DNA from: Pristiophorus japonicus
Lineage: Eukaryota
DNA length: 64,000 bases
Reading direction: 5' to 3'
Assembly (NCBI RefSeq): GCF_044704955.1
Contig: NC_091995.1
Location: 52,824,001-52,888,000, forward strand
Position numbers and translations under genes: made by a program. Of the stretch, positions 19,351 to 43,672 are shown piece by piece (position 1 is the first letter of the stretch; every line of letters begins with the position of its first letter). The notes under the pieces are model-generated. The model searched no databases. It was given only the letters and a program-made list of their open reading frames with translations, and was not told the DNA's origin.

Positions 19351-19366
19351 TAATTCTATATAATTA

Positions 19367-19899
19367 CCCTCTCTCACTCTCCCCTCAGTGCCCTACACTC
19401 CCAGTACTGGACATTCCCCACACTCACTGTGTCCCTCAGTTCTACATTCCCCTCTCTCACTCTCCCCTCAGGGCCCTGCACTCCCAGTACTGGACATTCC
19501 CCACACTCACTCTGTCCCTCAGTTCTACATTCCCCTCTCTCTCACTCTCCCCTCAGTGCCCTACACTCCCAGTACTGGACATTCCCCACACTCACTGTGT
19601 CCCTCAGTTCTACATTCCCCTCTCTCACTCTCCCCTCAGTGCCCTACACTCCCAGTACTGGACATTCCCCACACTCACTGTGTCCCTCAGTTCTACATTC
19701 CCCTCTCTCACTCTCCCCTCAGTGCCTTACACTCCCAGTACTGGACATTCCCCACACTCACTCTGTCCCTCAGTTCTACATTCCCCTCTCTCACTCTCCC
19801 CTCAGTGCCCTACACTCCCAGTACTGGACACTCCCTACATTCACTCTGTCCCTCAGTTCTGCATTCCCCTCTCTCACTCTCCCCTCAGTTCTACATTCC
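19367..19899. repeat. 83-bp C/T-rich minisatellite (about 6.4 copies) at the start of the intron after the TM exon
   Basis: The CCCAGTACTGG marker recurs at spacings of 83, 85, 83, 83 and 83 bp. Confidence 0.93.
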
Positions 19900-19917: not shown

Positions 19918-20031
19918 CTCTCCGTTGTTTTATCCAGATGACTATTCCGATAATCCCGAATGTAGCCAGTGCAACGATTAATCCAATGATAATATTAAGA
20001 TGGGAGCGTACACCAGTGTTTTCCGGTATTT
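19918..20031 (-). CDS. MHC class I heavy chain exon 5 (connecting peptide + transmembrane + basic stop-transfer)
   Basis: Acceptor tgtttcAG, donor G|gtaaga, phase 1, 114 nt: EIPENTGVRSHLNIIIGLIVALATFGIIGIVIWIKQRR. Confidence 0.85.
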
Positions 20032-20302
20032 CTGAAACACATTTGAATAATATCAGGATAGTCTGTCTGTTGCCAGATCCATTCCCAGTTCTGTGTTGAT
20101 GAGAGGACAATTTTCACCTCACCTACCCGTCGGTTATCTGACGGGATCGGGTCCATCACTGGTTTTACTGCCGCCTGATTTTACTCTCCACTGAAGATAA
20201 TAAAGTGTCACTTTGATGGTGGAATGAAACCGGGACTGCCCCGATCCCATGGGTTACCTGCCTGGCGAGTTCGCTTCTAATTACCCCCAATGTCTCTGTC
20301 CT

Positions 20303-21700
20303 AGAATCATAGCAAAATTACAACACAGAAGGAGGCCTTCGGCCCATCGTGTCCGTGTCGGGTGAAAAAGAGCTACCCAGCCTCATCCCACTTTCCAGCT
20401 CTTGGTCCGTAGCCCTGTAGGTTACGGAACTTCAAGTGCACGTCCAAGCACTTTTTAAATGTGATGAGAGTTTCTGCCTCTACCACCCTTTCAGGCAGTG
20501 AGTTCCAGACTCCCACCACCCTCTGGGTGAAAATTGTTTCCTCATTTCCCCTCTAATCCTTCTACCAACTACTTTAAATCTATGCCCCCTGATTATTGGC
20601 CCCCTCTGCGAAGGGAAATAGGTCATTCCTATCCACTCTATCTAGGCCCTTCATAATTTTATACACCTCAATAAGATCTCCCCTCAGCATCCTGTGTTCC
20701 AAAGAAAACGAACCCAGCCGACCCAATCTTTCCTCATAGCTAAAATTTTCCAGTCCTGGCAACATCCTCGTAAATCTCCTCTGTACCCGTTCTAGTGCAA
20801 TCACATCTTTCCTGTAATGTGGAGACCAGAACTGCACACAGTACTCCAGCTGTGGTCTAACTAGTGCTGTATACAGTTCTAGCATAACCTCCCTGCTCTT
20901 ATACTCTATGCCTCTGTTCCTCCCATTTATTATAAATTACGTTGCCGCCTTGCACCTTCCCAAATGCATTACCTCACACTTCTCCAGATTGAATTCCATT
21001 CTCCACTTTTCTGCCCAACTGACCAGTCCATCACACGGCCAATTTTTGTATTATCTGCAAACCTCTTTTATTATGCCCCTACATTTAAGTCTAAATCATT
21101 CATATATAGTACAAAAAGCAAGGACCCAGCACTGAGCCCTGCGGAACCCCACTGGTAACAGCCTTCCAATCATAAAAACACCCGTCAATCATTACCCTTT
21201 GCTTCCTGCCTCTGAGCCAATTTTGGATCCAACTTGCCACTCTCCCTTGGATCCCATGAGCTTTTACTTTTTTGACCAGCCTGCCATGTGGGACCTTGTC
21301 AACAACTTTGCTAAAATCCACGTAGACTACATCAAATGCACTGCTCTCATCGACACTCCTTGTTACTCCTCAAAAAATCCAATCCAGTTAGTCAGACATG
21401 ACCTTCCCTGAACAAATCCATGCTGACTGTCCTTGATTAATCTGTGTCTTTCTAAATGATGGTTTATAGCGTCCCCCAGAATTGATTCCAATAATTTGCC
21501 CACCAGCGAGGTTAAACAAATTGGCCTGTAATTACTCGGTCTAAACCTTCCTCCTTTTTAAACAATGGTACAAAGTTCGCAGTTCTCCAACCCTCTGGCA
21601 TCACTCCTGTAGCCAGGGAGGATTGGAAAATGATGGTCAGAGCCTCTGCAATTTCCTTCCTTGCTTCTTTTAATAGCCTAGGACATATTTCATCTGGCCT
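20303..21700 (-). mobile_element. Decayed CR1 LINE (RT to 3' end)
   Basis: [30 protein letters not shown] and [11 protein letters not shown] motifs. Confidence 0.85.
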
Positions 21701-21759
21701 TGGCCTTATTCCATCCCCAGGGTCACCAAGGAGTCAGCATCACTGATGGTTTTCACATC

Positions 21760-24700
21760 AAACTTCAAAGTAATGAAGAATAAATTGACTGCAGTAAACT
21801 GGGCTGAGCTGGTGATGAGTAAAACTACAGATAAATAGTGGGAACAGTTTAAAGGAAGTACTGGGTACAATACAACACCAGGACTTACCCGTACAATGCT
21901 AAGACTCCACTTCTGTAGTTAGGCAACCATGGTCAACAAATGAAAGAAGTGAGAGTATCAAGCTAAAGGGAAAGGCTGACACAAATGGTCAGAGATTGAG
22001 TTACAGAGCAGTTAGACAAGTATCAGCTCATCAGAGAGAGTCAGAATGGATTTTGAAGGGTAGGTCCTGTCTGACTAATCTCATTGAATTTTATGAGGAG
22101 GTCACTAACATGGTGGATAAGAGAGTGTCTATGGATGTTGTCTATATGGTATTCCAGAAGACATTTGATAAGGTTCTGCACAAGAGATTTTTAGCAAAAA
22201 GAACAGCGTACAGAATTGGAGCTAATCTTGTGACAGGGGTTGAAAGTTGGTTGGGAGGAAGGAGACAGAGAATAGGGATAAAGGGAATCTGCTCTGATTG
22301 GCAGGATGTGACGAGTGGTGTTCCCCAGGGATCTGGACTGAGGTCCCAGCATTTCACCATACATATTAATGACTTAATGAAGGAATAGAGACTTAATGAA
22401 GGATTAACCTGTGGAATTCCCTGCCGCAGAGAGTTGTTGATGCCAGTTCATTGGATATATTCAAGAGGGAGTTAGATATGGCCCTTACGGCTAAAGGGAT
22501 CAAGGGGTATGGAGAGAAAGCAGGAAAGGGGTACTGAGGGAATGATCAGCCATGATCTTATTGAATGGTGGTGCAGGTTCGAAGGGCCGAATGGCCTACT
22601 CCTGCACCTATTTTCTATGTTTCTATGTAAAGGCCAAGCTTGTATATCCAAGCTTGCAGATGGCACTAAGTTAGGAGACACAATAAAGGGACATTGACAG
22701 ATTAAATGAGTGAACTCCATCTGACATAGCTTTGCCCAATGTGGTGAAGTGTGAGATCATCCATATTAGATTGGAGGAAGACAAACTGGAATATTGTCTT
22801 CATGGTGAGAGACTTGGAACTGTAAAGGAGCAAAGAGATGTGGTGTCCATGTGCACAAATCACTAAAAGCTCGTGCACTGGTTTAAAAAAGCAATCCAAA
22901 AGGCTAATGGAATGTTGGCCTTTTCATAGAAACATAGAAAATAGGTGCAGGAGTAGGCCATTCGGCCCTTCGAACCTGCACCACCATTCAATAAGATCAT
23001 GGCTGATCATTCCCTCAGTACCCCTTTCCTGCTTTCTCTCCATACCCCTTGATCCCTTTAGCCGTAAGGGCCATATCTAACTCCCTCTTGAATATATCCA
23101 ATGAACTGGCATCAACAACTCTCTGCGGCAGGGAATTCCACAGGTTAACAACTTTCTGAGTGAAGAAGTTTCTCCTCATCTCAGTCCTAAATGGCCTACC
23201 CCGGATCCTAAGACTATGTCCCCTGGTTCTGGACTGCCCCAACATCGGGAACATTCTTCCCGCAGCTAACCTGTCCAGTCCCGTCAGAATCTTATACGTT
23301 TCTATGAGATCCCCTCTCATCCTTCTAAACTCCAGTGAATACAGGCCCAGTTGATCCAGTTTCTCCTCATATGTCAGTCCAGCCATCCCTGGAATCAATC
23401 TGGTGAACCTTCATTGCACTCCCTCAATAGCAAGAACATCCTTCCTCAGATTAGGAGACCAAAACTGAACACAATATTCCAGGTGAGGCCTCACTAAGGC
23501 CCTGTACAGCTGCAGTAAGACCTCCCTGCTCCTATACTCAAATCCCTTAGCTATGAAGGCCAACATACCATTTGCCTTCTTTACCGCCTGCTGTACCAAC
23601 ATGCCAACCTTCAATGACTGATGAACCATGACCCCAGGTCTCGTTGCACCTCCCCTTTTCCTAATGTGCCGCCATTCAGATAATATTCTGCCTTCGTGCT
23701 TTTTGCCCCCAAAATGGATAACCTCACATTTATCCACATTATACTGCATCTGCCATGCATTTGCCCACTCACCTAACCTGTCCAAGTCACCCTGCAGTCT
23801 CTTAGCGCCTCCTCACAGCTCACACCGCCACCCAGCTTAGTGTCATCTGCAAACTTGGAGATATTACACTCAATTCCTTCATCTAAATCGTTAATGTATA
23901 TTGTAAAGAGCTGGGGTCTCAGCACTGAGCCCTGCGGCACTCCACTAGTCACTGCCTGCCATTCTGAAAAGGACCCGTTTATCCCAACTTTCTGCTTCCT
24001 GTCTGCCAACCAGTTCTCTATCCACGTCGATACATTACCCCCAATACCATGTGCTTTGATTTTGCACATCAATCTCTTGTGTGGGACCTTGTCAAAAGCC
24101 TTTTGAAAGTCCAAATACACCACATCCACTGGTTCTCACTTGTCCACTCTACTAGTTACATCCTCAAAAAATTCCAGAAGATTCGTTAAGCGTGATTTTC
24201 CTTTCATAAATCCATGCTAATTTGGACCGATCCTGTCACTGCTTTCCAAATGGGCTGCTATTTCATCTTTAATAATTGATTCCAACATTTTCCCCACTAC
24301 TGATGTCAGGCTAATCGGTCGATAATTACTCGTTTTCTCTCTCCCTCCTTTTTTTTAAAGTGATGTTACATTAGCTACCCTCCAGTCCATGGGAACGGAT
24401 CCAGAGTCGATAGACTGTTGGAAAATGATCACCAATGCATCCACTATTTCTAGGGCCACTTCCTTAAGTACTCTGGGATGCAGACTATCAGGCCCCGGGG
24501 ATTTATTGGCCTTCAATCCCATCAATTTCCCTAACACAATTTCCCGCCTAATAAGGATATCCTTCAGTTCCTCCTTCTCACTCGACCCACTGTCCCCTAG
24601 TACATTCGGAAGGTTATTTTAGTCTTCCTTCGTGAAGACAGAACCAAAGTATTTGTTCAACTGGTCTGACATTTCTTTATTCCCCATTATAAATTCACCT

Positions 24701-26095
24701 GAATCCAACTGCAAGGGACCTACGTTTGTCTTCATTAATCTTTTTCTCTTCACATATTTAGAGAAGCTTTTGCAGTCAGTTTTTATGTTCCCTGCAAGCT
24801 TCCTCTCGTACTCTATTTTCCTCCTCTTAATTAAACCCTTTGTCCTCCTCTGTTGAATTCTAAATTTCTCCCAGTCCTCAGGTTTGTTGCTTTTTTAGCC
24901 AATTTATATGCCTCTTCCTTGGTTTTAACACCATCCTTAATTTCTCTTGTTAGCCACGGTTGAGCCACCTTCCCCGTTTTATTTTTACTCCAGACAGGGA
25001 TGTACAATTGCTGAAGTTCATCCATGTGATCTTTAAATGTTTGCCATTGCCTATCCACCGTCAACCCTTTAAGTGTCCTTTCCTTTGCCAGTCTATTCTA
25101 GCCAATTCACGCCTCATACCGTCGAAGTTACCTTTCCTTAAGTTCAGGGCCCTAGTTTCCGAATTAACTGTGTCACTCTCCATCTTAATAAAGAATTCTA
25201 CCATATTATGGTCACTCTTCCCCAAGGGGCCTCGCACAACAAGATTGCTAATTAGTCCCTTCTCATTACACCCAGTCTAGGATGGCCAGCTGTCGAGTTG
25301 GTTCCTCGACATATTGGTCTAGAAAACCATCCCTTATACACTCCAGGAAATCCTCCTCCACCACATTGCTACTAGTTTGGTTAGCCCAATCTATATGTAG
25401 ATTAAAGTCGCCCATAATAACTGCTCTACCTTTATTGCACACATCCCTTATTTCTTGTTTGATGCTGTCCCCAACCTCACTACTTCTGTTTGGTGGTCTG
25501 TACACAACTCCCACTCGCGTTTTCTGCCCTTTGGTATACCTCGAGGGGGCTAGAATACAAAGTGAGGAAATTATGCTTCAGTTGTACAGAGCCTTGGTCA
25601 GACTCCATCTGGTGTACGACATTCTGTTCTGGGCACCAAACCTCATGCACGATATATTGGCCTTGGAGGGGTACACTGCAGGTTCACCAGAATGAGACCA
25701 GCTCAGAGGGTTAAATTATGAGGACACATTTAGCTTGTATTTCCTTGAGATTAGAAGGGTGATCTAATCGAGAGATTTAAATTAATAAAGGGATTCGACA
25801 GAGTAGATACAGAGAAACTATTTTCTCTGGAGGTTAAGGTGGAACAAGAGAGCATTTAGGGTGAAATCAGAAAGCACTTTTTCACACAAAGGGTAGTAGC
25901 AATCTGGAACTCTCTCCTCCAAAAGGCGATGGATGCTGGCGGTTCAATTGAAGTTTTCAAGACTGAGATCAAGAGATGTTTGTTGGGTAAGGGTATCAAG
26001 GGATATAGAGCAATGGCAGGTAAATGGAGTTAAGGTACAGATCAGCCATGATCTCATTCAATGGTGGAACAGACTCAATATCCTACGTCTGTTCC
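21760..26095 (+). mobile_element. Old CR1 split by younger CR1 insertions (short + tail 22404-22628; large - copy 22925-25540)
   Basis: RT motifs continue across the insertions: GRSCLTNLIEF..., SKLADGTKLG..., LQLYRALVR... Confidence 0.7.
22925..25540 (-). mobile_element. CR1 LINE, ORF2 (EN+RT) frameshifted, with tail
   Basis: Successive ORFs 25514 to 23015 translate to CR1 ORF2 (YRPP, GDFN, FADD). CATAGAAACATAGAAA tail at 22925. Confidence 0.93.
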
Positions 26096-26109
26096 GATGT
26101 TCCATACCT

Positions 26110-26112
26110 GCG

Positions 26113-26150
<38 letters not shown>
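26110..26150. repeat. (CG)n(CA)n microsatellite just inside the intron after the alpha3 exon
   Basis: gcgcgcgcgcg followed by (ca)15. Confidence 0.95.
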
Positions 26151-26151
<1 letters not shown>

Positions 26152-26168
26152 CCAGTGCAGTTCCTTAC

Positions 26169-26447
26169 CCCACCGATAGACCTTTGCCTCTGCCAGGCTG
26201 CTGTGTTCAATTTGACAGGAGTATTGATCCTCATCCCCAGCATGTACTTCAATCTCTTTCTTGATCTGATGGGTCCCATTGTGGTTCGGTCGAACCCCTG
26301 AGGAGTGGCTCTCAGACACTAGCTCTCCATTCCTGAGCCAGATCACCTCGATGGCAATTGGGTAAAATCCAGTAACCAGGCAGGAGAGTGTGGGCAGTTT
26401 GTCCTGATGATTGGGGTCACTTCTGGAGATGAACACTTCAGGCTGAA
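26169..26447 (-). CDS. MHC class I heavy chain exon 4 (alpha3, IgSF C1 domain)
   Basis: 279 nt, ctttcAG / G|gtaagg, phase 1. VQPEVFIS..TLSCLVTGFYPIAIEVIWLRNG..GVRPNHNGTHQI..YSCQIEHSSL..RW has both C1 cysteines and the core Trp. Confidence 0.95.
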
Positions 26448-26553
26448 CTGAAAGGGGAAAGGGAGAAAACACAGACACCGAATGAAATGGGATAATAGTT
26501 TCCTAGATCTGTGAAGTTAGATCAGAACGTGGGATAAAAACTGAAATAAATAC

Positions 26554-26829
26554 CTTTCCTTGCAAAGTATTCCTTTCCAGCTCGCAAATATAAATGTAAA
26601 AACTGAACAAATCCTTCTTCCAGATGTGTTTTCCAATACTTGTTCCAGGATTCATCAGAATTCCATTTCTCCTTAGTCTTCACTGCATTATGATTGGTTG
26701 CGATCCATTTCATTCTGTCTGGTTCTAAACTAAGATAGTCCTTTCCATTATATCCAACATTCATCGATTTCTTAATGGAGCCGTCTTCTGTTATTTCAAC
26801 AGTTGAAATCCATTGAAAAATGTGAATTC
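26554..26829 (-). CDS. MHC class I heavy chain exon 3 (alpha2 domain, cysteine-less)
   Basis: 276 nt, tgacAG / G|gtattt, phase 1. GIHIFQW..GYNGKDYLSL..KWIA..KTKEKW..LEEGFVQFLHLYLRAGKE aligns to class I alpha2. A 106-bp intron separates it from alpha3. Confidence 0.92.
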
Positions 26830-27822
26830 CTGTCAGTAACCAAACAGGGATCAATAATCGGTTGTTAATGGGAAATCATAAATCAGTCTGATCAGAGGGG
26901 AATGAGCATCTCAAAGTATCAGGTAGAAATGGAGGGATAGAGTCACAGTCTGACAGGGGAAAGGGACTATAATATCAGGTAGAAATATCAGAAATGTTCC
27001 CAATGGAAGGCGATTATGGGACTTTGTGGCAGTGAGTTCACAAACCAGCCCGAACTTTCCAATAAGTTTCACCCGATTAATGGGCAGAAGTTGGATGGAA
27101 TGATTATTGGGAAATTGGGCAGAGCTCCATCCAAGATGGTTAATTCCCAATAGTGCAAGCAAAGAGGTTAATTCCCAGCACATCAATGAAAACGTTAATT
27201 CTCAGCATGCTAACAACAGGAGTTAATTCCTAGTACACTAACAAAAGGGATTCATTCGCAGCACGGATGTCCCAGGGATCGGTGCTGGGGGATGGGCTGA
27301 GTGGAGGTGTCCCAGGGGTCAGTGTTGGGATCCTACTGCATCCAGTCTCCCTAAACAACCTGGATTCAGAAACAGAGTGTAAGTTATACTGACACTGAAC
27401 TGCGGGGTAGGGGCAGCGCCTCTTCGAAGCGGCTAGAGGGCCCTGCACAAAATGTTGCAAATGTAATTTAGTAGTGAGGGTTCGGCACCAAGATGTAGTA
27501 TTAAAAAGTCGAAACAAGTTGCACAGATGACTGGGAGAGACAGTTAGAGTGAGAAATATTACAGAATTAGGTGGGATCATCGAAAATACAAAGAGGTCTA
27601 AGTTAGATTTAGAGTGCATGAGTGTAAATGCTGGAAATACTCAGCAAGTCAGGAAGCATCTATGGAGAGAGAAACTGAGTTAATGTTTCAGCTCGATGAC
27701 CTTTTATCAGAACCTTCAATATAGGACTGAAGACAGGCAGCATTTCTTCGTCCTAAAAGTGATCAGTGCCTGCAATGGTCTCTTGGTTAGGGTGCTGGGT
27801 TTAGGATACTCACTATCCTTCC

Positions 27823-30800
27823 TGTCATGTATGTACTTGTGGGTCACTAGCCACTAGATGGCGTCACTGTTGGAGGCCATTGGGCTGCACTTACATGTGT
27901 GCAGCCCAAGTATAAAAGCCCAGCCATTTTGTATTATACTCACTTTGGGCCTTAATAAAGCAGAGCCAAGATTATACCTTTTGGAGTCAACAATACTTAG
28001 TCTAACAAGTTATTACATACACAACATTTGGCGACGAGGCAACAACAACCTTTGCGTGCAAAAATGAGCACAATTGGATTGTTGGAGCGATTTGTGGAAG
28101 AAGATTGGGCCGACTTTGTGGCCAACAAAATGGAGGGGGAAGACGATGCAGATCGGCGCCGGGCAGTGTTCCTCACGGTTTGTGGTCTGAAAATTTATGG
28201 TCTTATAAAGAATCTCCTTTTGCCTGTGAGTCCAGCAGAGAAAAAGTATGAAGAATTATGTACCCTGGTATGTGACCACCTTAAGCCAGACGAAGGCATC
28301 ATCATCTCAAGAAACAGATTTTACACACAGAGGACCAGAATGTGGCGGAATTCCTTGCCGACCTGAGATGTCTAGCTGGACTGTGTAAGTTCGGTGCTGT
28401 GTTGGCAGACATGCTGCGGGACTTCTTTGTAATCGGCATCAACCACGAGATGATCCTGCGTAAACTACTGGCGGTGGAGACGTTGGACTTAAACAGGGCC
28501 ATCACTATCGCTCAGTCATGCATGACGACGGACAAAAGCTTAAAGCAGATATCAATGAAAAATCGAAACTCAGCAAGTACTGTAAATATGATTGATTTGG
28601 CGTTTGGCAGAGCGGCACATGGCAGGGCCTACCCGACTGCGTACATGAAACCTGTGGCTGCCCAAAGTCCGCCAACGAGAATGCATCCAATTTCTCCATG
28701 TTGGCATTGTGGGGGAAATCACCGGCACCATCAGTGTCGATTTAAACAAAATAGTTGTAAAGGTTGTTTGAGAGTGGGGCATTTCCAGCGCAAGTGTCTG
28801 CAACTGAGCAAGCGAGCTGTGACACACCACGTGGAGGATGATGAACAGTCTAGCACGGATCTGGATACGCAATCTGAGATACCAGAGGAGAAAGTGTATG
28901 GACTGTATACATTCCTAACTAAGAGCAAACCGATAATGATCAACGTGAAATTTAATGGGGTGCCGGTATCGATGGAACTGGACATGGGGGTGAGTCAATC
29001 GATGATGAGCCAGAGGGCATTCAACAAGTTGTGGGGTACTAAGGCTGTGAGGCCCAGGCTGAGTCCAGTCAATGCCAAGTTGTGTACGTACACTAAAGAA
29101 CTCATAACGGTGATTGGCAGTGCCAAAATTAAAGTGTCATATGACGGTGCAGTTCACGAGTTACCGCTCTGGATTGTCCCAGGCAATGGTCCAACACTGT
29201 TCGGCAGGAACTGGCTTGAAAAAATCAAATGCGATTGGAACGACATCAAGGCGTTGTCGTCGGAGGATGATTCATGTGCTCAAGTACTGAGCAAGTTCCC
29301 CTCGCTGTTCGAACCAGGTATCGGCAACTTCACGGGAGCTAAGATGCAGATCCACGTGGACTCGGATGTAAGACCCGTCCATCATAAAGCTCGGGCAGTG
29401 ATGTGTATGATGAGGGAGAAGGTCGAAATCGAACTGGACAGACTCCAGCGTGAAGGGATCATATCACCGGTTGAATTTAATGTATGGGCCAGCTCCATTG
29501 TTCCTGTGCTGAAAAGTGATGGCACAGTCAGAATCTGTGGAGACTACAAGGCTACAATCAACAGGGTTTCGAAACAGGATCAGTACCCATTACCGAAAGC
29601 TGATGACTTGTTTGCAACACTAGCAGGGAGGAAGTCGTTCACCAAACTGGACTTGACATTGGCCTACATGACACAGGAGCTGGTCGAGACATCGAAGAGA
29701 CTTACGTGCACTAACACGCATAAAGGACTATTTATTTATCACAGGTGCCCTTTCGGAATTCGCTCGGCTGCAGCAATATTTCAGAGGAACATGGAGAGTC
29801 TACTGAAGTCCGTTCCCAGAACCGTCGTGTTCCAAGATGACATCCTGATCACAAGTTGTGACTCCGAGGAACATCTGAACAACCTGGAAGAGGTTCTACA
29901 TCGTCTGGACAAAGTGGGACTCAGACTGAAACGCTCGAAGTGCATCTTCATGGCACCAGAGGTCGAATTCCTGGGGAGGAAAATTGCTGCTGACGGCATC
30001 AGGCCCATGGACGTGAAAACCAAGGCCTTCAAGAATGCACCCAAGCCGCTGAATGTGACGGAACTGCGTTCGTTCCTGGGTCTACTCAACTACTTCGGTA
30101 ACTTCTTACCTAGATTGAGCACCTTATTAGAACCACTGCACATGCTGCTAAGGAAAGGCGACAACTGGGCGTGGGGTGCGTCTCAAGACAGAGCTTTTGA
30201 GAAAGCCACTAATCTGTTTTTCTCTAACAAGCTGCTGGTAGATTATGACCCATGTAAATATTTAGTATTGGCCTGTGATGCTTGGTCATAGGGAATTGGT
30301 TGCGTACTCCAACAAGCTAATGAGTCGGGTAAACTTTAACCAGTCTCTTATGCTTCAAAAAGTTTGTCTAAAGCGGAAAGAGCCTACAGCATGGTAGAGA
30401 AAGAAGCACTAGCCTGTGTGTATGGGGTTAAAAAGATGCATCAGTACCTGTTCGGTCTTAGGTTTGAAATGGAAACAGATCACAAGCCACTCATTTGATT
30501 GTTTTCTGAAAACAAAGTTTTCAATACCAATCCCTGCCATTGCCACTCCCACCAGTCAGTCACCCAGCCACCAGTCACAACAGACTCTGAACACTCACCC
30601 AAGGCTGGAGTTGAACTGAGATGGTCAACCCGGGAGCGTAAAACACCGGACCGGTAAAAGACCGTGTCAACATCTCAGAGAGGGGTATTGTCATGTATGT
30701 ACTTTTGGGATCACTAGCCACGTATGTGCAGCCCAAGTATAAAAGACCAGCCATTTTGTATTATACTCACTTTGGGTCTCAATAAAACAGAGCCAAGGTT

Positions 30801-30853
30801 ATACCTTTTGGAATTAACAGTACTTAGTCTAACAAGTTATTGCATACACAACA
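27823..30853 (+). mobile_element. Gypsy/Ty3 LTR retrotransposon, defective (gag-PR-RT-partial RNase H, integrase deleted), in class I intron 2
   Basis: LTRs 27823-28026 and 30689-30853 (TG...CA), 5-bp TSD CTTCC, PBS TGGCGACGAG, purine tract before the 3' LTR. ORF 28342-30291 has zinc knuckles, protease ELDMG and RT FQDD. Confidence 0.93.
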
Positions 30854-31217
30854 CTTCCCTTATAATACAAGCACATGGACTCAAGAGATAGAGAGACCTC
30901 TGATTATTTAAAAATATACTAATACAACCCACTACATGCAGCACTCATGAAATCGGTACCAATTATACCCATGAACAGAGAACTCATCGCAGGTTCATAA
31001 TCTGTGTACTCCAGACTACTCAGGCTAGCCCCATGCAAGACTAGAAAGCGTTTCTAAAGTGTTCCTGTATCCAGTACCTTTATATGGTTAATCACGTAAG
31101 GCAAACAGGGGGTTAATACATAAGGACTTTTCTACTACCTGCAGTTAGTGTGGAAGTACACATGGTTAATATGTCATTGCACCAATAATCCTCCTCCCTA
31201 CATGCACTTGCTCATTA

Positions 31218-31634
31218 GTGTCAGCTGTGGCTCAGTGGGTTGCACCCTTGCCTCGGAGTCAGAAGATTGTGGGTTCAAATCCCACTCCAGGAACTTGAGC
31301 ACGTAAAAATCTAGGCTGATATGCCAGTACACTGCTGAGGGAGTGCTGCACTGTCAGAGGTGCCGTCTTTCAGATGAGATGTTAAACCGAGGCCCCCCTG
31401 CACTCTCAGGTGGATGTAAAAGATCCCATAGCACTATTTCAAAGAAGTGCAGCGGAGGTAACCCTCCATTAACTTATCCCATTGCTGTTTGTGGGAGCTT
31501 GCTATGTGCTAATTGGCTGCTGCGTTTCCCACATTACAACAGTGACTACACTCAAAAAGTACTTCATTGGCTGTGAAGCCCTTTAGGACGTCCTGAGATT
31601 GTGAAAGGCGCTATATAAATGCAAGTCTTTCTTT
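31218..31634 (+). mobile_element. tRNA-derived DeuSINE (SacSINE1-like)
   Basis: A box TGGCTCAGTGG and B box GGTTCAAATCC, a Deu-like core GTGCTGCACTGTCAGAGGTGCCGTCTTTCAGATGAG, and the tail AAAGGCGCTATATAAATGCAAGTC. Confidence 0.8.
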
Positions 31635-32314
31635 ATAAATCTGAAAATACTCAGCAGGTCAGGTGCAAGGCATCTGTGGAGAAAGAACATTTCAATGATT
31701 CAGCTCGCTGACCTTTTATCAAAACATCTGTTTCTCTCTCCACAGATGCCCCGTGACCTGCTGAGTAATTCCAGCAGTTTCTGTTTTTATTTCAGATGTC
31801 CAGTATCTGCAGGATTTTGCTTTTATTCATGTTACGATCTGTTGATTGTTCTCTGCAATTCTCCATCCAGCAGTGACTGCCTCTGTCCCTGACACTTTTC
31901 AATTCCTGATCTCTCTGAGGTATTTATTACCGAGAGCTCCATTCTCCTTTCACACTGCCTCCTGGATTGGCATTGCCCGTTCTGCTCTACTGGAGAAGAC
32001 CAATCTCATCCCCATATATAAGAATACTCAGCAAGAAGCCAGGATTTGACCAGCAATCTTCCCTTTCCCGGATGATCGCAACCATCTCACCATATTCTCA
32101 CCTTGCTTTATCACAAACCTGACCTTCATCAATGTGGACAGAACTTTGTAAATATCTCCATCAGAATAGAGAAAAGGAAGAGAATAACCATCCGTGTGAC
32201 CCTGATTCACACTACACCCCAGTGTCACAGAGTGCAGTATAACTAGGGCTGGGTACCTGTCCGGCATCCACTAAACAGGGCAGTCAGTAGATGATTCTGC
32301 ATCGCTGATCTTAC

Positions 32315-32575
32315 CGGATGTCTGGTTTGTCCCCTTCATTATCATATTCAGATTCTCCTTTGCCATGGCTGACCGTGTGTTCCCGAGATCTGTGAGAGAA
32401 TCCCAGTATTGCTCACTGAGATAGTCTGCCATGAACTGCTGCCTGGGAATTGCCCGGCGGATATCAGTGTCATGATAATTAAGTTGAACTCCCTTCACCA
32501 TCGCAACATTAATAACCTCGGGCAAGTCGCTAATGCCGGAGATTGCTGTGTACATCACAGTAAGTGATTTCGTGT
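32315..32575 (-). CDS. MHC class I heavy chain exon 2 (alpha1 domain)
   Basis: 261 nt, ttttacAG / G|gtaaga, phase 1. DTKSLTVMYTAISGISDLPEVINVAMVKGVQLNYHDTDIRRAIPRQQFM..QYWD..NQTS includes the conserved N86 sequon. Confidence 0.9.
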
Positions 32576-32749
32576 CTGTAAAACAAAAATTAAATGGACA
32601 GGTTATTAAACATATACAAGCATTGGCACCTAATCGAAGTGAAGCCTATCCACATAGTGACAATCTCCAATAATCCACCACTTTATCTCAACATCAGATC
32701 CTGTCAGATATTAACTGGCTCAGAATCAGATTAGAGCACTGCATACAGT

Positions 32750-33290
32750 TCTGATCGTCATATTTTAAAAAGGATATAGAGGCATTGGAGAGGCTGCAGA
32801 GAAGATTTACAAGGATGATACCAGAAATGCGAGGGTATACATTTCAGGAAAGGATGGACAGACTGGATCCCTTTTCTCTTGAAAAAAAGAAGGCTGAGGG
32901 GTGACCTAATAGAGGCCTTTAAAATTATGAAAGGTTTTGATAAAGTGGAAACAGAGAGAATGTTTCCACTTGTGGGGAAGAGCATAACTAGAGGCCATCA
33001 ATATAAGATAGTCACCAAGAAATTCAATAGGGGATTCAGAAGAAACTTCTTTACCCAGCAAGTGGTGAGAATGTGGAACTCACTACCACAGGGAGTGGTT
33101 GAAGCGAATAGTATCGATGCATTTAAGGGGAGGCAAGACATGCATATGAGGGAGAAGGGAATAGAGGGTTATGCTGATAGATTTAGATGAGGAAAGGCGG
33201 GAGGAGGCTCGAGTGGAGTATAATCGCTGGCATGGACTGGTTAGGACAAATGGCCTGTTTCTGTGCCATATATCCATGTAATCCTCTATA
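32750..33290 (+). mobile_element. CR1 3' fragment
   Basis: RRLRGDLIEAFKIMKG..RNFFTQQVVRMWNSLP. Confidence 0.85.
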
Positions 33291-33419
33291 AAGATGGCTG
33301 CAGCCTCTCAGAACAGGGACTAAACACGGAATCAGAGTCACTCAGACATCCGATGGATTCAATGTGTCCCACATGGGAGAGTCTGGGACACATTCGAGGA
33401 GTTTGAGTGTTAAATACAA

Positions 33420-35022
33420 GGGGGTCGAAATTCGGTGCTGCCGTTTTTTAGGTGGTGTCACCGTCTGAATGGAGATTTTACTACCAGGCGGCAGTTGCCA
33501 CCTCCAACTGCGAAATTCAGTTTTGCTGCCTGAAAAGGGAATTACAGCGTTAAATCGGGCGTCGCACGCTACTCTGGAGGCGGTAAATGTCGGTAAATGA
33601 GGCGGCAACATCCAGGCGTCAATCATCATTTGTAACTGCGCCACAGATATACTGCCGCCACCTGGATTCAATTGAGGCGGTGACTGGGTGTGACACTGCC
33701 TCGTGCATATATTCACTTGCTACACACTCTCACAGGGTGAAGATGCAGCAGCAGCTCACCAGCACGCTCACCGCTTCCCTGACGCCGCCGTCAATGCTCT
33801 GCTTGATGCCTTGGAGAGGCGTCGAGAACTACTGAGGACAGAGGCTGCGAGGAGGCCACAGCCTCAAACATTTCGCAGGCTATGGTGGAAAGTCGCTGAA
33901 ATATTGTCAGCGAGTGGCACTGCCCAGGACAGCGACCCAATGTTGTAAGAAGTGGAACGGTGTGACTTGGTTGCTCAGGGTGAATATATTTTACATTAAC
34001 CTGAACATGCCATGCTCTGAGCTCAATGGGCAGTCTTTCCTCAATTCGCCAGGACACTAGTCCCAGCCTGGTTCAAGTGAAGCCCATTCTGACGGAACAG
34101 CTCCCTCTTTCCCCAGTACTGGTGCCAGTGCCCCATGAATCAAAACCCATTTCTCCCACACCAATCTTTGAGCCACGCATTCATCTCTCTGATCTCATTT
34201 ACCCTATTCAAATTTGCACGTGGTTCAGGTAGTAATCCATAGATTATTATCTTTGTAGTTCTGCTTTTTAATTTAGCCACTAGTGGCTCATACACCCTCA
34301 GCAGAACCTCTTTGTTTGTCCTACCTGTGTCATTGATACCCAGGTGGACCACGACAACTGGATTTTTCCTCTCCCATTCCAAGTTCCTCTCCAGTCCAGA
34401 GAAGATGTCCTTAACCCTGACATCAGGCAGACAACACAGCCTTCGGGACACATCAGGTCTATCGCTAACCTGGAACAGTAACCTGGGATACACTTGGTCT
34501 ATCTCTAATCTGGGACACTAACCTGGGACACACCCAATCTATCTCTAACCTGGAACACTAACCTGGGACACACCCGGTCTATCGCTAACCTGGAACAGTA
34601 ATCTGGGACACACCCGGTCTATCTCGAACCTGGATCACTAACATGGGCCACACCCGGTCTATCTCTAACATGGGCCACACCCAGTCTATCTGAAACCAAG
34701 GGAAAGTGACATGGGATAGATCCAACTCTATCTGTAAGTTAAGACAGAGAACATCTGGAGGGAGGTATTAAGGAGACCCTGCTGACCAGGGAACATCTGG
34801 AGGGAGATATTAAGGATAACCCGAGGGCAGGTCTGTTGTCATGACCTGAAACATGTGGGAACAAAAATGTGATTGCCCCTGAAAACACATGCGGAAATCG
34901 CGATGTGCGATCAACCCGCGCCTATTCCAAGTAATGCAGGCAGCACGCAAACTTTGCCATTTTGGACACAAAACGACATGTAGCGAAGAAAAACCGGGCA
35001 CCACGGAGCCGAATTTCGTTTT
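33420..35022 (+). mobile_element. Harbinger-derived element with a Myb/SANT-like fragment, containing a CR1 ORF1 piece and a tandem repeat
   Basis: Inverted ends CGAAATTCGG / CCGAATTTCG. RFPDAAVNALLDALERRRELL..LWWKVAEIL..(frameshift)QCCKKWN resembles the Myb-like protein at 46535. A minus-strand CR1 esterase piece lies at 34020-34460. Confidence 0.55.
34445..34690. repeat. About 40-bp tandem repeat (about 6 copies)
   Basis: CACCCGGTCTATC(G/T)CTAACCTGGAACA(G/C)TAA.CTGGGACA with period 40. Confidence 0.8.
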
Positions 35023-35314
35023 AGAATACAAGAATGAAGAGAAACAGTGATGTTTGGGAAGATGAAGTGCGATGCTGTGGGGTGCGGTCACTGTATGAAC
35101 AGTCTCGCTGTACACCAGGAGTGTTGGACTAACAGGGGCAGCATCTCCACTGTGCTTAACATCCTATAATGACCACTTTAAACATGGCCAGTAGGGGCCC
35201 AAAGGATGTTGGTGGTGGATTGTCTGAGATAACCTGGTCTATTCAACCATGAGGGCATCACAGCTGTGCCTGAGGTGGGTGAGACATGGATTATTCTCCC
35301 CGTGTGTTTAGAAA

Positions 35315-38300
35315 TGGGAGGGAGAACAGCCAGTTGTCGTGGTGCACATTGGTACCAACGACATAGGTAAAAAAAGGGATGAGGTCCTACGAAACGAATT
35401 TCAGGAGCTAGGAGCTAAATTAAAAAGTAGGACCTCAAAAGTAGTAATCTCGGGATTGCTACCAGTGCCACGTGATAGTCAGAGTAGGAATCGCAGGATA
35501 GCGCAGATGAATACGTGGCTTGAGCAGTGGTGCAGCAGGGAGGGATTCAAATTCCTGGGGCATTGGGACCGGTTCTGGGGGAGGTGGGACCAGTACAAAC
35601 CGGACGGTCTGCACCTGGGCAGGACCGGAACCAATGTCCTAGGGGGAGTGTTTGCTAGTGCTGTTGGGGAGGATTTAAACTAATATGGCAGGGGGATGGG
35701 AACCAATGCAGGGAGACAGAGGGAAACAAAAAGGAGACAAAAGCAAAAGACAGAAAGGAGATGAGGAAAAGTGGAGGGCAGAGAAACCCAAGGCAAAGAA
35801 CAAAAAGGGCCACTGTACAGCAAAATTCTAAAAGGACAAAGGGTGTTAATAAAACAAGCCTGAAGGCTTTGTGTCTTAATGCAAGGAGTATCCGCAATAA
35901 GGTGGATGAATTAATTGTGCAAATAGATGTTAACAAATATGATGTGATTGGGATTACAGAGACGTGGCTCCAGGATGATCAGGGCTGGGAACTCAACATT
36001 CAGGGGTATTCAACATTCAGGAAGGATAGAATAAAAGGAAAAGGAGGTGGGGTAGCATTGCTGGTTAAAGAGGAGATTAATGCAATAGTTAGGAAAGACA
36101 TTAGCTTGGATGATGTGGAATCGATATGGGTAGAGCTGCAGAACACCAAAGGGCAAAAAACGTTAGTAGGAGTTGTGTACAGACCTCCAAACAGTAATAG
36201 GGATGTTGGGGAGGGCATCAAACAGGAAATTAGGGGTGCATGCAATAAAGGTGTAGCAGTTATAATGGGTGACTTTAATATGCACATAGATTGGGCTCGC
36301 CAAACTGGAAGCAATACGGTGGAGGAGGATTTCCTGGAGTGCATAAGGGATGGTTTTCTAGACCAATATGTTGAGGAACCAACTAGGGGGGAGGCCATCT
36401 TAGACTGGGTGTTGTGTAATGAGAGAGGATTAATTAGCAATCTCATTGTGCGAGGCCCCTTGGGGAAGAGTGACCATAATATGGTGGAATTCTGCATTAG
36501 GATGGAGAATGAAACAGTAATTTCAGAGACCATGGTCCAGAACTTAAAGAAGGGTAACTTTGAAGGTATGAGGCGTGAATTGGCTAGGATAGATTGGCGA
36601 ATGATACTTAGGGGGTTGACTGTGGATGGGCAATGGCAGACATTTAGAGACCGCATGGATGAATTACAACAATTGTACATTCCTGTCTGGCGTAAAAATA
36701 AAAAAGGGAAGGTGGCTCAACCGTGGCTATCTAGGGAAATCAGGGCTAGTATTAAAGCCAAGGAAGTGGCATACAAATTGGCCAGAAATAGCAGCGAACC
36801 TGGGGACTGGGAGAAATTTAGAACTCAGCAGAGGAGGACAAAGGGTTTGATTAGGGCAGGGAAAATGGAGTACGAGAAGAAGCTTGCAGGGAACATTAAG
36901 GCGGATTGCAAAAGTTTCTATAGGTATGTAAAGAGAAAAAGGTTGGTGAAGACAAACGTAGGTCCCCTGCAGTCAGAATCAGGGGAAGTCATAACGGGGA
37001 ACAAAGAAATGGCAGACCAATTGAACAAGTACTTTGGTTCGGTATTCACTAAGGAGGATACAAACAACCTTCCGGATATAAAAGGGGTCAGAGGGTCTAG
37101 TAAGGAGGGGGAACTGAGGGAAATCTTTATTAGTCGGGAAATTGTGTTGGGGAAATTGATGGGATTGAAGGCCGATAAATCCCCAGGGCCTGATGGACTG
37201 CATCCTAGAGTACTTAAGGAGGTGGCCTTGGAAATAGCGGATGCATTGACAGTCATTTTCCAACATTCCATTGACTCTGGATCAGTTCCTATGGAGTGGA
37301 GGGTAGCCAATGTAACCCCACTTTTTAAAAAAGGAGGGAGAGAGAAAACAGGGAATTATAGACCGGTCAGCCTGACCTCAGTAGTGGGTAAAATGATGGA
37401 ATCAATTATTAAGGATGTCATAGCAGTGCATCTGGAAAATGGTGACATGATAGGTCCAAGTCAGCATGGATTTGTGAAAGGGAAATCATGCTTGACAAAT
37501 CTTCTGGAATTTTTTGAGGATGTTTCCAGTAAAGTGGACAAAGGAGAACCAGTTGATGTGGTATATTTGGACTTTCAGAAGGCTTTCGACAAGGTCCCAC
37601 ACAAGAGATTAATGTGCAAAGTTAAAGCACATGGGATTGGGGGTAGTGTGCTGACGTGGATTGAGAACTGGTTGTCAGACAGGAAGCAAAGAGTAGGAGT
37701 AAACGGGTACTTTTCAGAATGGCAGGCAGTGACTAGTGGAGTGCCGCAAGGTTCTGTGCTGGGGCCCCAGCTGTTTACATTGTACATTAATGATTTAGAC
37801 GAGGGGATTAAATGCAGTATCTCCAAATTTGCGGATGATACTAAGTTGGGTGGCAGTGTGAGCTGCGAGGAGGATGCTATTAGGCTGCAGAGTGACTTGG
37901 ATAGGTTAGGTGAGTGGGCAAATGCATGGCAGATGAAGTATAATGTGGATAAATGTGAGGTTATCCACTTTGGTGGTAAAAACAGAGAGACAGACTATTA
38001 TCTGAATGGTGACAGATTAGGAAAAGGGAAGGTGCAACGAGACCTGGGTGTCATGGTACATCAGTCATTGAAGGTTAGCATGCAGGTACAGCAGGCGGTT
38101 AAGAAAGCAAATGGCATGTTGGCCTTCATAGCGAGGGGATTTGAATACAGGGGCAGGGAGGTGTTGCTACAGTTGTACAGGGCCTTGGTGAGGCCACACC
38201 TGGAGTATTGTGTAGAGTTTTGGTCTCCTAACTTGAGGAGGGACATTCTTGCTATTGAGGGAGTGCAGCGAAGGTTCACCAGACTGATTCCCGGGATGGC

Positions 38301-38766
38301 GGGACTGACCTATCAAGAAAGATTGGATCAACTGGGCTTGTATTCACTGGAGTTCAGAAGAATGAGAGGGGACCTCATAGAAACGTTTAAAATTCTGACG
38401 GGTTTAGACAGGTTAGATGCAGAAAGAATGTTCCCAATGTTGGGGAAGTCCAGAACCAGGGGTCACAGTCTGAGGATAAGGGGGAAGCCATTTAGGACCG
38501 AGATGAGGAGAAACTTCTTCACCCAGAGAGTGGTGAACCTGTGGAATTCTCTACCACAGAAAGTAGTTGAGGCCAATTCACTAAATATATTCAAAAGGGA
38601 GTTAGATGAAGTCCTTACTACTCGGGGGATCAAGGGTTATGGCGAGAAAGCAGGAAGGGGGTACTGAAGTTTCATGTTCAGCCATGAACTCATTGAATGG
38701 CGGTGCAGGCTAGAAGGGCTGAATGGCCTGCTCCTGCACCTATTTTCTATGTTTCTATGTTTCTAT
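35315..38766 (+). mobile_element. Young CR1 LINE in class I intron 1 (antisense to the gene): 3' half of ORF1, intact ORF2 and tail
   Basis: ORF1 SGNH-esterase-like part (VHIGTND, DGLH), uninterrupted ORF2, 3' UTR and (TTCTATGT)n tail. Confidence 0.96.
35761..38667 (+). CDS. CR1 ORF2: APE endonuclease + reverse transcriptase (968 aa, intact)
   Basis: EN motifs LNARS, ITETW, GDFN and SDH; RT motifs [10 protein letters not shown] and FADD; no stops. Confidence 0.95.
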   Translation: MRKSGGQRNPRQRTKRATVQQNSKRTKGVNKTSLKALCLNARSIRNKVDELIVQIDVNKYDVIGITETWLQDDQGWELNIQGYSTFRKDRIKGKGGGVALLVKEEINAIVRKDISLDDVESIWVELQNTKGQKTLVGVVYRPPNSNRDVGEGIKQEIRGACNKGVAVIMGDFNMHIDWARQTGSNTVEEDFLECIRDGFLDQYVEEPTRGEAILDWVLCNERGLISNLIVRGPLGKSDHNMVEFCIRMENETVISETMVQNLKKGNFEGMRRELARIDWRMILRGLTVDGQWQTFRDRMDELQQLYIPVWRKNKKGKVAQPWLSREIRASIKAKEVAYKLARNSSEPGDWEKFRTQQRRTKGLIRAGKMEYEKKLAGNIKADCKSFYRYVKRKRLVKTNVGPLQSESGEVITGNKEMADQLNKYFGSVFTKEDTNNLPDIKGVRGSSKEGELREIFISREIVLGKLMGLKADKSPGPDGLHPRVLKEVALEIADALTVIFQHSIDSGSVPMEWRVANVTPLFKKGGREKTGNYRPVSLTSVVGKMMESIIKDVIAVHLENGDMIGPSQHGFVKGKSCLTNLLEFFEDVSSKVDKGEPVDVVYLDFQKAFDKVPHKRLMCKVKAHGIGGSVLTWIENWLSDRKQRVGVNGYFSEWQAVTSGVPQGSVLGPQLFTLYINDLDEGIKCSISKFADDTKLGGSVSCEEDAIRLQSDLDRLGEWANAWQMKYNVDKCEVIHFGGKNRETDYYLNGDRLGKGKVQRDLGVMVHQSLKVSMQVQQAVKKANGMLAFIARGFEYRGREVLLQLYRALVRPHLEYCVEFWSPNLRRDILAIEGVQRRFTRLIPGMAGLTYQERLDQLGLYSLEFRRMRGDLIETFKILTGLDRLDAERMFPMLGKSRTRGHSLRIRGKPFRTEMRRNFFTQRVVNLWNSLPQKVVEANSLNIFKRELDEVLTTRGIKGYGEKAGRGY

Positions 38767-39074
38767 AACACTTTAGTCCAGGAATGGTGAAATTTTACCT
38801 GCTCCCAATCTGTGCGAACATTAAAATGACCCATTTTAACCACTTTCCATTTGCTACAAGCTTCTCTGCTCTCCGTGTTCCTGCATCCTGCTGTCAGGAG
38901 GCGTGTACACAACTCCCACCTCAGACTGACAGCCTGTGCTGGCTTCAGTGGTACAAAATATCAGGCAGTGTGTGTAACAGGCGGCTGATCAAATATCACC
39001 CGTTTCAAACTCTCGCTAAAAGTTCTGAATCACCCCCCAGAGAGTGAGAGTGGAGGGTTGAGTTCTTTACTTAC

Positions 39075-39126
39075 CGGGAGAGACCCAGGGAAAGCACAGG
39101 GATGTGGAGAGAAGGATCAGCAACAT
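39075..39126 (-). CDS. MHC class I heavy chain exon 1 (signal peptide)
   Basis: ATG..MLLILLSTSLCFPWVSP then G|gtaagt (phase 1). It joins exon 2 in frame (G+AC = Asp) and lies directly downstream of the TATA and SXY elements. Confidence 0.82.
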
Positions 39127-42700: not shown

Positions 42701-43672
42701 TTAGCACCCCTCGGCAGACTCTGAGTTCTGGAACCCTGAGGTCTGTGCTCTCTGCCCTGGGCAGTGCCATGTTCTACAGTCTTGCCTGTGAAAGGCACCA
42801 TTCTGTGTACAGTACTTGCCGGGTTTGAGTCCACAGGATGAATGATTTGCTTGGTGCTGCAGGTCGAGGTCATGAACACCTGACTGATGCTGATGGCCTT
42901 CTGCAGGTTGACTGCGTTGTCGGCAGATAATAGCTTGTGAAGGAGGCCCTCGTGGCCAATTCCTATAACAAAGATGTCTCGCAATGCTTCATTGAGGTCC
43001 GTGCCAAAATCACACGGTGCTGCAAGTCTCCTGAGGTCGGCAGCATGTTTTGCAATCTCCTGGCCCTCAGGTCTGCGGTGAGTGTAGAATCTGTGCCTGG
43101 CCGTGAGGATGCTCTCTTTTGATTTAAGTTGGTCACAAATTAGTTCAGTCAGCTCGTCGTATGTCTTATCCGTGGCCTTCGTGGGTGCCAGCAAGTCTCT
43201 GAAGAGGCGGTAGACCTCAGGCCCACAACTGGTCAGCAATATAGCCTTGCGCTTCTCTGCCAATGTGTCCATCTCCCCTGCCAGGTCGTTTGCCACGAAA
43301 TATAGCTCGAGCCTTTCCGTGAAGGCATCCCAATCATCACCCTCTGCGAAGTCTTTTAGTGTGCCAGTTGTTATGTTTGTAATGTACCTATGAATGACTC
43401 CACGAGGCAATGTGTTGTACTCAAACTGCAGTGACCTTGGTCCTTTATTCCCAACTCAAGAGTGAGGCAGCCGCTTGCTGGCTCCCCTTTTATACAGCCC
43501 CTGCCACCAGGGCAGGAAACCCTTGTATCGACCAGTTGCACCCTCTAGTGGTGCCAACATGTATATACGCAGTGTAAACCTTATTGACAATACATCAGGT
43601 AAACAAGTCTCCATCTTATGCAACTATACAGTGACTACACAGAGAGTATATCTATAGTCTGCATATATAACA
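39791..43672 (-). mobile_element. Gypsy-type LTR element with gag + protease but no recognisable RT/integrase
   Basis: LTRs 43369-43672 and 39791-40091, TSD CTAAC, PPT GGGGGAGAGTGA. Gag ORF 42331-43410 has CWRCGGNHRAHQC / CKACNMKGHLQRMC and protease VDTGAS. Confidence 0.9.

Follow-up and report, generated by a model that had tools for sequence, protein, structure and literature searches.

The 64,000-nucleotide (nt) stretch of the sawshark Pristiophorus japonicus analyzed here (contig NC_091995.1, positions 52,824,001 to 52,888,000; hereafter the window, numbered from its first letter) carries on its minus strand, between positions 39126 and 19918, a gene for an MHC (major histocompatibility complex) class I heavy chain whose alpha2 domain has neither cysteine of the usual disulfide bond. 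Exon 1 (39126-39075; 52 nt, donor GTAAGT) supplies the start codon and the signal peptide in 17 codons plus 1 nt, and its product is identical to residues 1-17 of the public protein P0330; the alpha1 domain lies in exon 2 (32575-32315; 261 nt, phase 1 to 1). Exon 3 (26829-26554; 276 nt) encodes the alpha2 domain, exon 4 (26447-26169; 279 nt) an alpha3 C1-set immunoglobulin (Ig) domain with both of its cysteines, and exon 5 (20031-19918; 114 nt) the connecting peptide and transmembrane (TM) segment, ending at a phase-1 donor (AGAG/GTAAGA). When the edges of the five exons were checked by script, every acceptor was found to be an AG behind a pyrimidine tract, every donor a GT and every junction in phase 1, and there was no in-frame stop in a summed length of 982 nt (327 codons plus 1 nt). 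The check bears out the five GT-AG, phase-1 exons and the open 327-codon frame that an earlier note on this DNA had proposed. The frame has no stop codon of its own, and the last base of the model is the edge of a splice donor. Long introns of the gene are on a scale of 5.5-6.5 kb.

Exons were searched singly against Pfam, and the public proteins P0193 and P0330 were used for whole-protein tests. The alpha2 exon matched MHC_I with 62 bits and the alpha3 exon C1-set with 61 bits. Alone, the alpha1 exon matched profile positions 3-88 of MHC_I with 25 bits, which is below the cut-off of 28.3; on the identical 327 residues of P0330, MHC_I scored 93.6 bits. An MHC_I platform, followed by a C1-set domain and then by a TM segment, each on separate phase-1 exons, is the plan of an MHC class I heavy chain. 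The alpha1 exon has an N-glycosylation site (NQT) at the N86 position, with Val at position 7 and Gly at position 84, and the alpha2 exon retains T143, K146, W147, and Y171 and has His at position 159.

The disulfide bond between Cys101 and Cys164 is taken to be a hallmark both of class I molecules and of class I-like ones, and in mammals it is a checkpoint of heavy-chain folding. In the window gene, gap-free HMMER alignments to solved chains, including the shark chain 7cpo, 7edo, and the chicken chain 4e0r, placed Val (codon 26800-26798) opposite Cys101 and Phe (codon 26611-26609) opposite Cys164. Neither the alpha1 nor the alpha2 exon encodes any cysteine, and the alpha3 pair is retained (in the motifs LSC and YSC), so that the alignments agree with what the earlier note had claimed for both replacements, for a cysteine-free platform and for the alpha3 pair. 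All other features of a class I heavy chain are present in the gene; the Cys101-Cys164 bond is the one that is missing. A mistake in alignment or exon calling could in principle mimic such a loss, and we regard that explanation as almost certainly wrong: several solved chains agree in alignments free of gaps, the alpha2 exon has exactly the 276 nt typical of alpha2, cysteine is absent from the whole of both domains, and the same pattern recurs in about 88 related alpha2 domains. The artifact was rejected on these grounds. A search of the PDB with the alpha2 exon found no solved structure of a cysteine-less relative.

To collect relatives of the gene, the alpha2 exon was run with HMMER against the full set of 1.84 billion representative proteins, and the best full-length match then served as the seed of a family search. 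Clustering at 90% identity gave more than 90 clusters of close relatives, with many paralogs per species. Members of the family were found in Heterodontus francisci, Mustelus asterias, Hemiscyllium ocellatum, Scyliorhinus canicula, S. torazame, and Carcharodon carcharias, and also in Chiloscyllium plagiosum, C. punctatum, Stegostoma tigrinum, Rhincodon typus, Cetorhinus maximus, Heptranchias perlo, and P. japonicus itself. Neither the scan nor the family search returned a ray or chimaera protein at the family level, and the nearest chimaera and lungfish matches, at about 30% identity, have both cysteines. The relatives carry automatic RefSeq names ("F10 alpha chain-like"), and the family is only about 34% identical to the classical lineage UAA. 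Within it, the alpha2 domain of the window gene groups with P0193, a sister copy, then with a Heterodontus gene, and then with a "GFVQ" group of Chiloscyllium, Hemiscyllium, Stegostoma, Cetorhinus, and Carcharodon genes whose alpha2 identity to the window is 75-79%. The alpha1 domain retrieves the same "GFVQ" genes, galeomorph orthologs, at 70-73% identity. That alpha1 and alpha2 are conserved between squalomorphs and galeomorphs, and that the frames are open in all cases, speaks for purifying selection on both domains. The alpha3 domain is closest to those of other squalomorph genes, whatever their sublineage, and similarity that follows the host rather than the sublineage is the usual sign of homogenization of alpha3 within species.

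The two cysteine positions were scored in an alignment (A1) of 59 full-length family members from 12 shark species and 13 other shark class I sequences. Position 101 was Val in 56 of the 59 members, Ile in two and Ala in one, and in none was it Cys. At position 164 the counts in A1 were L20 F16 C5 S5 Y4 G4 D2 W1 T1, an unpaired Cys164 thus persisting in five members, and the residues seen there in the family were L, F, C, S, Y, G, D, W, T, H, and V. The alpha3 pair (C203 and C259), N86, and W147 were invariant in the 59 full-length members, Y7 was missing from every one of them, and T143, K146, and W147 were largely retained in the family. C101, C164, Y7, and Y159 were present in all 13 of the other shark sequences. 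In an alpha2 tree built with columns 101 and 164 excluded, the family, including the window gene, formed a single clade (support of 98 in the Shimodaira-Hasegawa-like approximate likelihood ratio test, SH-aLRT; stem length 0.99). It stood apart from three groups in which both cysteines are kept: the classical UAA of Triakis, a clade in which a protein of Callorhinchus joins a "nonclassical MHC class I antigen" of the nurse shark, and a further clade that is multicopy. The difference between Cys and non-Cys at position 101 required one change on this tree. Position 164 changed at least 25 times within the family, which ranks it 4 of 91 alpha2 columns, and its neighbors on the helix (exon columns 67, 68, 72, 75, 76, and 79) vary to a similar degree. 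Both cysteines were present in 146 of the 156 non-family alpha2 domains retrieved and both were missing in one.

These results suggest that the loss of Cys101 is an old trait, shared by the family and derived from one event, and not a sign of decay; its confinement to one branch, together with the invariant alpha3 cysteines, N86, and W147, argues for an old and selected variant. Val101 appears to have become fixed while its former partner at position 164 joined a variable stretch of the alpha2 helix. The earlier note had read the two replacements as a paired loss to hydrophobic residues that was maintained by selection. The absence of Cys101 from all 59 members supports the part of that claim that concerns selection rather than decay, and the free variation of position 164, which is still Cys in some members, contradicts the part that concerns a matched hydrophobic pair.

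The structure of the sister copy P0193 was predicted using AlphaFold2 with the family alignment, and the predicted local distance difference test (pLDDT) score was about 95 over alpha1-alpha2, including the blocks that contain residues 101 and 164. Comparison of this model by Foldseek with solved class I chains (chicken, duck, and shark) and with MR1 gave a target TM-score of about 0.87, with values up to 0.89. The protein of the window gene is accordingly predicted to adopt the ordinary fold of a class I platform with an Ig domain. The Cys101-Cys164 bond is near-universal in class I but dispensable for the fold. When the residues expected of a classical class I molecule (Y7, Y59, R/Y84, T143, K146, W147, Y159, and Y171) were examined, the window gene was found to have V7, G84, and H159; with these substitutions, and with Y7 missing from all 59 family members, a classical, UAA-type identity was rejected.

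We propose that an ancestor of the family swapped Cys101, on the floor strand of alpha2, for Val. This loss would have left Cys164, on the alpha2 helix, without its partner, and position 164 would then have become one of the variable helix positions that mark sublineages, being Phe in the sublineage of the window gene. Hydrophobic packing of Val101 on residue 164 may stand in for the covalent pin. The heavy chain would pair with beta2-microglobulin, and the protein would be anchored in the membrane by its TM segment. In the putative groove, the C-terminal anchors T143, K146, and W147 are kept and Y7, R/Y84, and Y159 are lost, which suggests that it probably takes a nonstandard ligand, or takes peptides in a nonstandard way. 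Recognition might be by a receptor of innate-like T cells or of the natural killer (NK) type.

The locus is already represented among public proteins by P0330 (P. japonicus, 832 amino acids), residues 1-327 of which are the exact product of the five exons. The remaining 505 residues consist of Pfam ZSWIM1-3 RNaseH-like and MULE transposase domains and are not encoded in the window. The fusion to this ZSWIM1/3-type MULE part is probably an annotation artifact caused by read-through; as a lesser alternative, it may be a real chimeric transcript. The sister copy P0193 (with P0327-P0329) is identical to the window gene in alpha1 and in the TM segment and differs by one change, F to S, in alpha2. 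It has a paralog-type alpha3 and a normal cytoplasmic tail of 38 residues (ETYEAGNPQQ...).

One DNA-like run and three RNA-like runs of the same organism were aligned to positions 26160-27100. The RNA-like contigs end precisely at exon edges, with loose ends at 26830 that match the end of the alpha1 exon and loose ends at 26169 that match the start of the TM exon over 30/30 nt. A 594-nt RNA-like contig skips the 106-nt intron 26448-26553 exactly (26447 to 26554, CT..AC on the plus strand). The match of contig ends and intron skip to the predictions indicates that the predicted splicing is in use. The abundant RNA contigs belong to another paralog, of the P0187 type, and at 26601 the contig that covers alpha2 carries G, the base of the Ser variant found in the sister copy P0193. 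The window has A at this site, where both the RNA contig and P0193 have G; the difference changes Phe to Ser on the alpha2 helix, and the codon aligns with W167, which in classical class I lies at the N-terminal end of the groove. In the alpha3 region (26160-26447), the window differs from a DNA contig of the same species at four positions, all of paralog type, and from the abundant paralog transcript at eight sites, six of them amino-acid-changing and all towards the paralog type. This suggests gene conversion between copies, or polymorphism. The alpha3 positions that set the copies apart are 26280, 26281, 26287, 26321, 26330, 26349, 26354, and 26408.

UEA, the lineage to which the family is compared below, was described in a 2021 abstract (Almeida et al., J Immunol 207:824) that reportedly presented it as a complex multigene family, found in sharks only and divided into three sublineages; it is also said to have no conserved anchor residues. 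The class I lineages of cartilaginous fish comprise UAA, UBA, UCA, UDA, UEA, UFA, and UGA (PMC10751288, PMC12562908). Two expanded class Ib families are recognized in sharks, UBA, which arose from UAA, and UEA, which is more ancient (PMC12562908). UEA is a multicopy shark class Ib lineage that falls into one class Ib cluster with UDA and UFA (PMC10751288, PMC12562908). In the supplement of one of these papers, genes are labeled only "MHC-Ib", with no lineage names or protein accessions (PMC10751288). The family that includes the window gene is a large multigene family, as its number of clusters shows, and all family-level matches came from sharks. Being expanded, shark-only, about 34% identical to UAA and without the invariant anchors, it is by elimination likely to be UEA. 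UDA, which is ancient, single-copy and shared with chimaeras, was rejected, as the clade of nurse shark and Callorhinchus sequences, which we infer to be UDA, is separate and keeps both cysteines. The further multicopy clade with both cysteines fits UBA. UFA and UGA, which are CD1-like, single or low in copy number and present in sharks and rays, were likewise rejected for a family that is highly multicopy and seen only in sharks. Of the domain-wise phylogenies envisaged in the earlier note, the alpha2 tree places the family as one clade apart from other shark class I, in a set of sequences that includes no named UEA.

Taken as a whole, the evidence makes it probable that this sawshark gene belongs to a large class Ib family restricted to sharks, most likely UEA, and that Cys101 was lost in the ancestor of this family. 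A number of observations weigh against this reading. The name UEA appeared on no protein in the database searches and cluster look-ups, in which only automatic RefSeq names were seen; its use here rests on elimination and on the abstract as reported, and is likely rather than proven. No other host gene and no MHC framework gene was found in the window, the region from 39.3 to 64 kb containing only transposon-type open reading frames (ORFs). The pairing with beta2-microglobulin, the ligand and the contact between Val101 and residue 164 are things that we only infer. With respect to the window copy itself, the public model P0330 joins the TM exon to the ZSWIM1/3-MULE gene, and the cytoplasmic tail of the sister copy has no match in the window beyond chance matches to satellite (exact 6-mer search and low-stringency tblastn). 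The RNA contig with G at 26601 is the transcript of the near-identical sister copy; it was considered as the window gene's own transcript and rejected, since its sole difference is the F-to-S change of P0193. No RNA contig specific to the window copy was found in the three RNA-like runs over 26160-27100, although such contigs drop rare variants. The splicing anticipated by the earlier note is therefore seen at the alpha2/alpha3 junction, in contigs that come from sister or paralog copies.

The points that concern the name could also mean that the family is distinct from all of the named lineages, UAA to UGA, which we consider quite unlikely. Neither a database name nor a reference sequence links it to UEA, and T143, K146, and W147 are largely kept, as against the lack of conserved invariant residues reported for UEA; however, an expanded, shark-only family with about 34% identity to UAA is what UEA is described to be, the separate multicopy clade with both cysteines already fits UBA, and a family this large in the whale shark and bamboo shark genomes would hardly have been overlooked by surveys that used those genomes. 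In reviews, UBA and UEA are the only class Ib families listed as expanded in sharks (PMC12562908). The suggestion in the earlier note that the gene represents an undescribed lineage is very probably wrong, given that the locus is modeled as P0330, that the large family is annotated and that its properties fit those published for UEA. In a literature search that covered sources other than the primary descriptions of UDA and UEA, no mention of the alpha2 cysteines turned up for the class Ib lineages of sharks.

The window copy is intact through its TM exon. Read-through of the TM donor adds 14 further codons and then a stop. An 83-bp tandem repeat of 6.3 copies (19363-19889) starts 29 bp past this donor, and a satellite with a 37-bp unit, present in about 391 copies with 95% matches (1-14503), fills the space in which cytoplasmic exons would be expected. 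On the plus strand, the tandem repeat gives rise to long but spurious ORFs in which S, P, and L abound; the satellite, 14.5 kb long in the window, has a strong AT skew and a weaker GC skew and extends past the window start. The 3' end of the gene could possibly be formed by exons that lie beyond the satellite and outside the window or by read-through of the TM donor, or the copy could be truncated. In the last case, or if it were silenced, the window copy would be a young pseudogene that duplicates a functional sister gene, and its intact exons would merely reflect recent duplication. We find this somewhat unlikely. In its favor, exons of the P0193 type were not found in the 19.9 kb downstream, where the tandem repeat and the satellite lie, the public model P0330 fuses the TM exon to the ZSWIM1/3-MULE gene, the only RNA contig that covers alpha2 is the sister's Ser variant and the alpha3 contigs seen were of paralog type only. 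On the other hand, all five exons are open and have perfect splice sites, a 3' intron of more than 20 kb is possible in a gene whose introns already measure 5.5-6.5 kb, and a protein made by read-through of the TM donor would still be a membrane protein, with a short tail. The tendency of contigs to drop rare variants also means that the lack of an RNA contig proves nothing. Whichever status the window copy has, the loss of the cysteines is a trait of the family and not decay.

The introns of the gene and its surroundings contain a number of repeats and retroelements. An uninterrupted ORF of 968 codons (35761-38667, plus strand) with endonuclease- and reverse transcriptase (RT)-like motifs, of the ORF2 type of long interspersed nuclear elements (LINEs), lies in intron 1 antisense to the gene, and numerous degraded copies of it are scattered over the window. 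A protease/RT-type pol ORF (28342-30291, plus strand) is located in intron 2. A (CA/TG)n and then (CG)n microsatellite (26115-26165) begins about 15 bp past the donor of the alpha3 exon. Beyond the gene, long retroelement ORFs of integrase type and of gag-like type with a zinc knuckle occur at 50478-51725 (plus strand) and 42331-43410 (minus strand), and positions 61899-62940, within a GC-rich stretch, are occupied by a coding-like tandem repeat that is open on both strands, with units such as PSIPPATFGPPSLRQRSALHPSGNVR.

The single window gene is the more ordinary part of these findings, being an already modeled sawshark member of a probably known lineage. The family-wide pattern, in which Val101 is fixed, position 164 is variable and the rest is class I-like, is a modest structural point that may already be in the literature. 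An expanded shark family that is conserved and yet has long been without the alpha2 bond provides a natural test of the purpose of that bond, and draws attention to class Ib molecules whose folding and ligand loading may be different. Tentatively, and with more doubt than conviction, we suggest that a UEA-type family has existed without the alpha2 disulfide since before the split of squalomorphs and galeomorphs, with Val101 fixed and residue 164 serving as a diversifying residue of the groove and helix. If this is true and undescribed, the family would be the largest natural collection of class I platforms that lack the disulfide, and its folding and loading would be predicted to be independent of the ERp57/PDI oxidoreductase step that acts on the alpha2 bond in classical class I.

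Among known systems, the closest to the window family is UEA, which by description is likewise multicopy, confined to sharks, divergent from UAA and without conservation of the invariant residues at the peptide termini. The sawshark was probably not part of the data set of the UEA study. UFA and UGA, which are MHC-linked, resemble the window gene in that they are nonclassical class Ib genes found in elasmobranchs and have altered grooves, and differ in being single- or low-copy and present in rays as well (PMC10751288, PMC12562908), whereas the window family is multicopy and was seen in sharks only. With UAA (solved structures 7cpo and 6lup), the window gene shares the exon plan, the fold, the N86 glycan site, the alpha3 pair, T143, K146, W147, and Y171. 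UAA, at about 34% identity to the family, differs in that it keeps the Cys101-Cys164 bond together with Y7, R84, and Y159.

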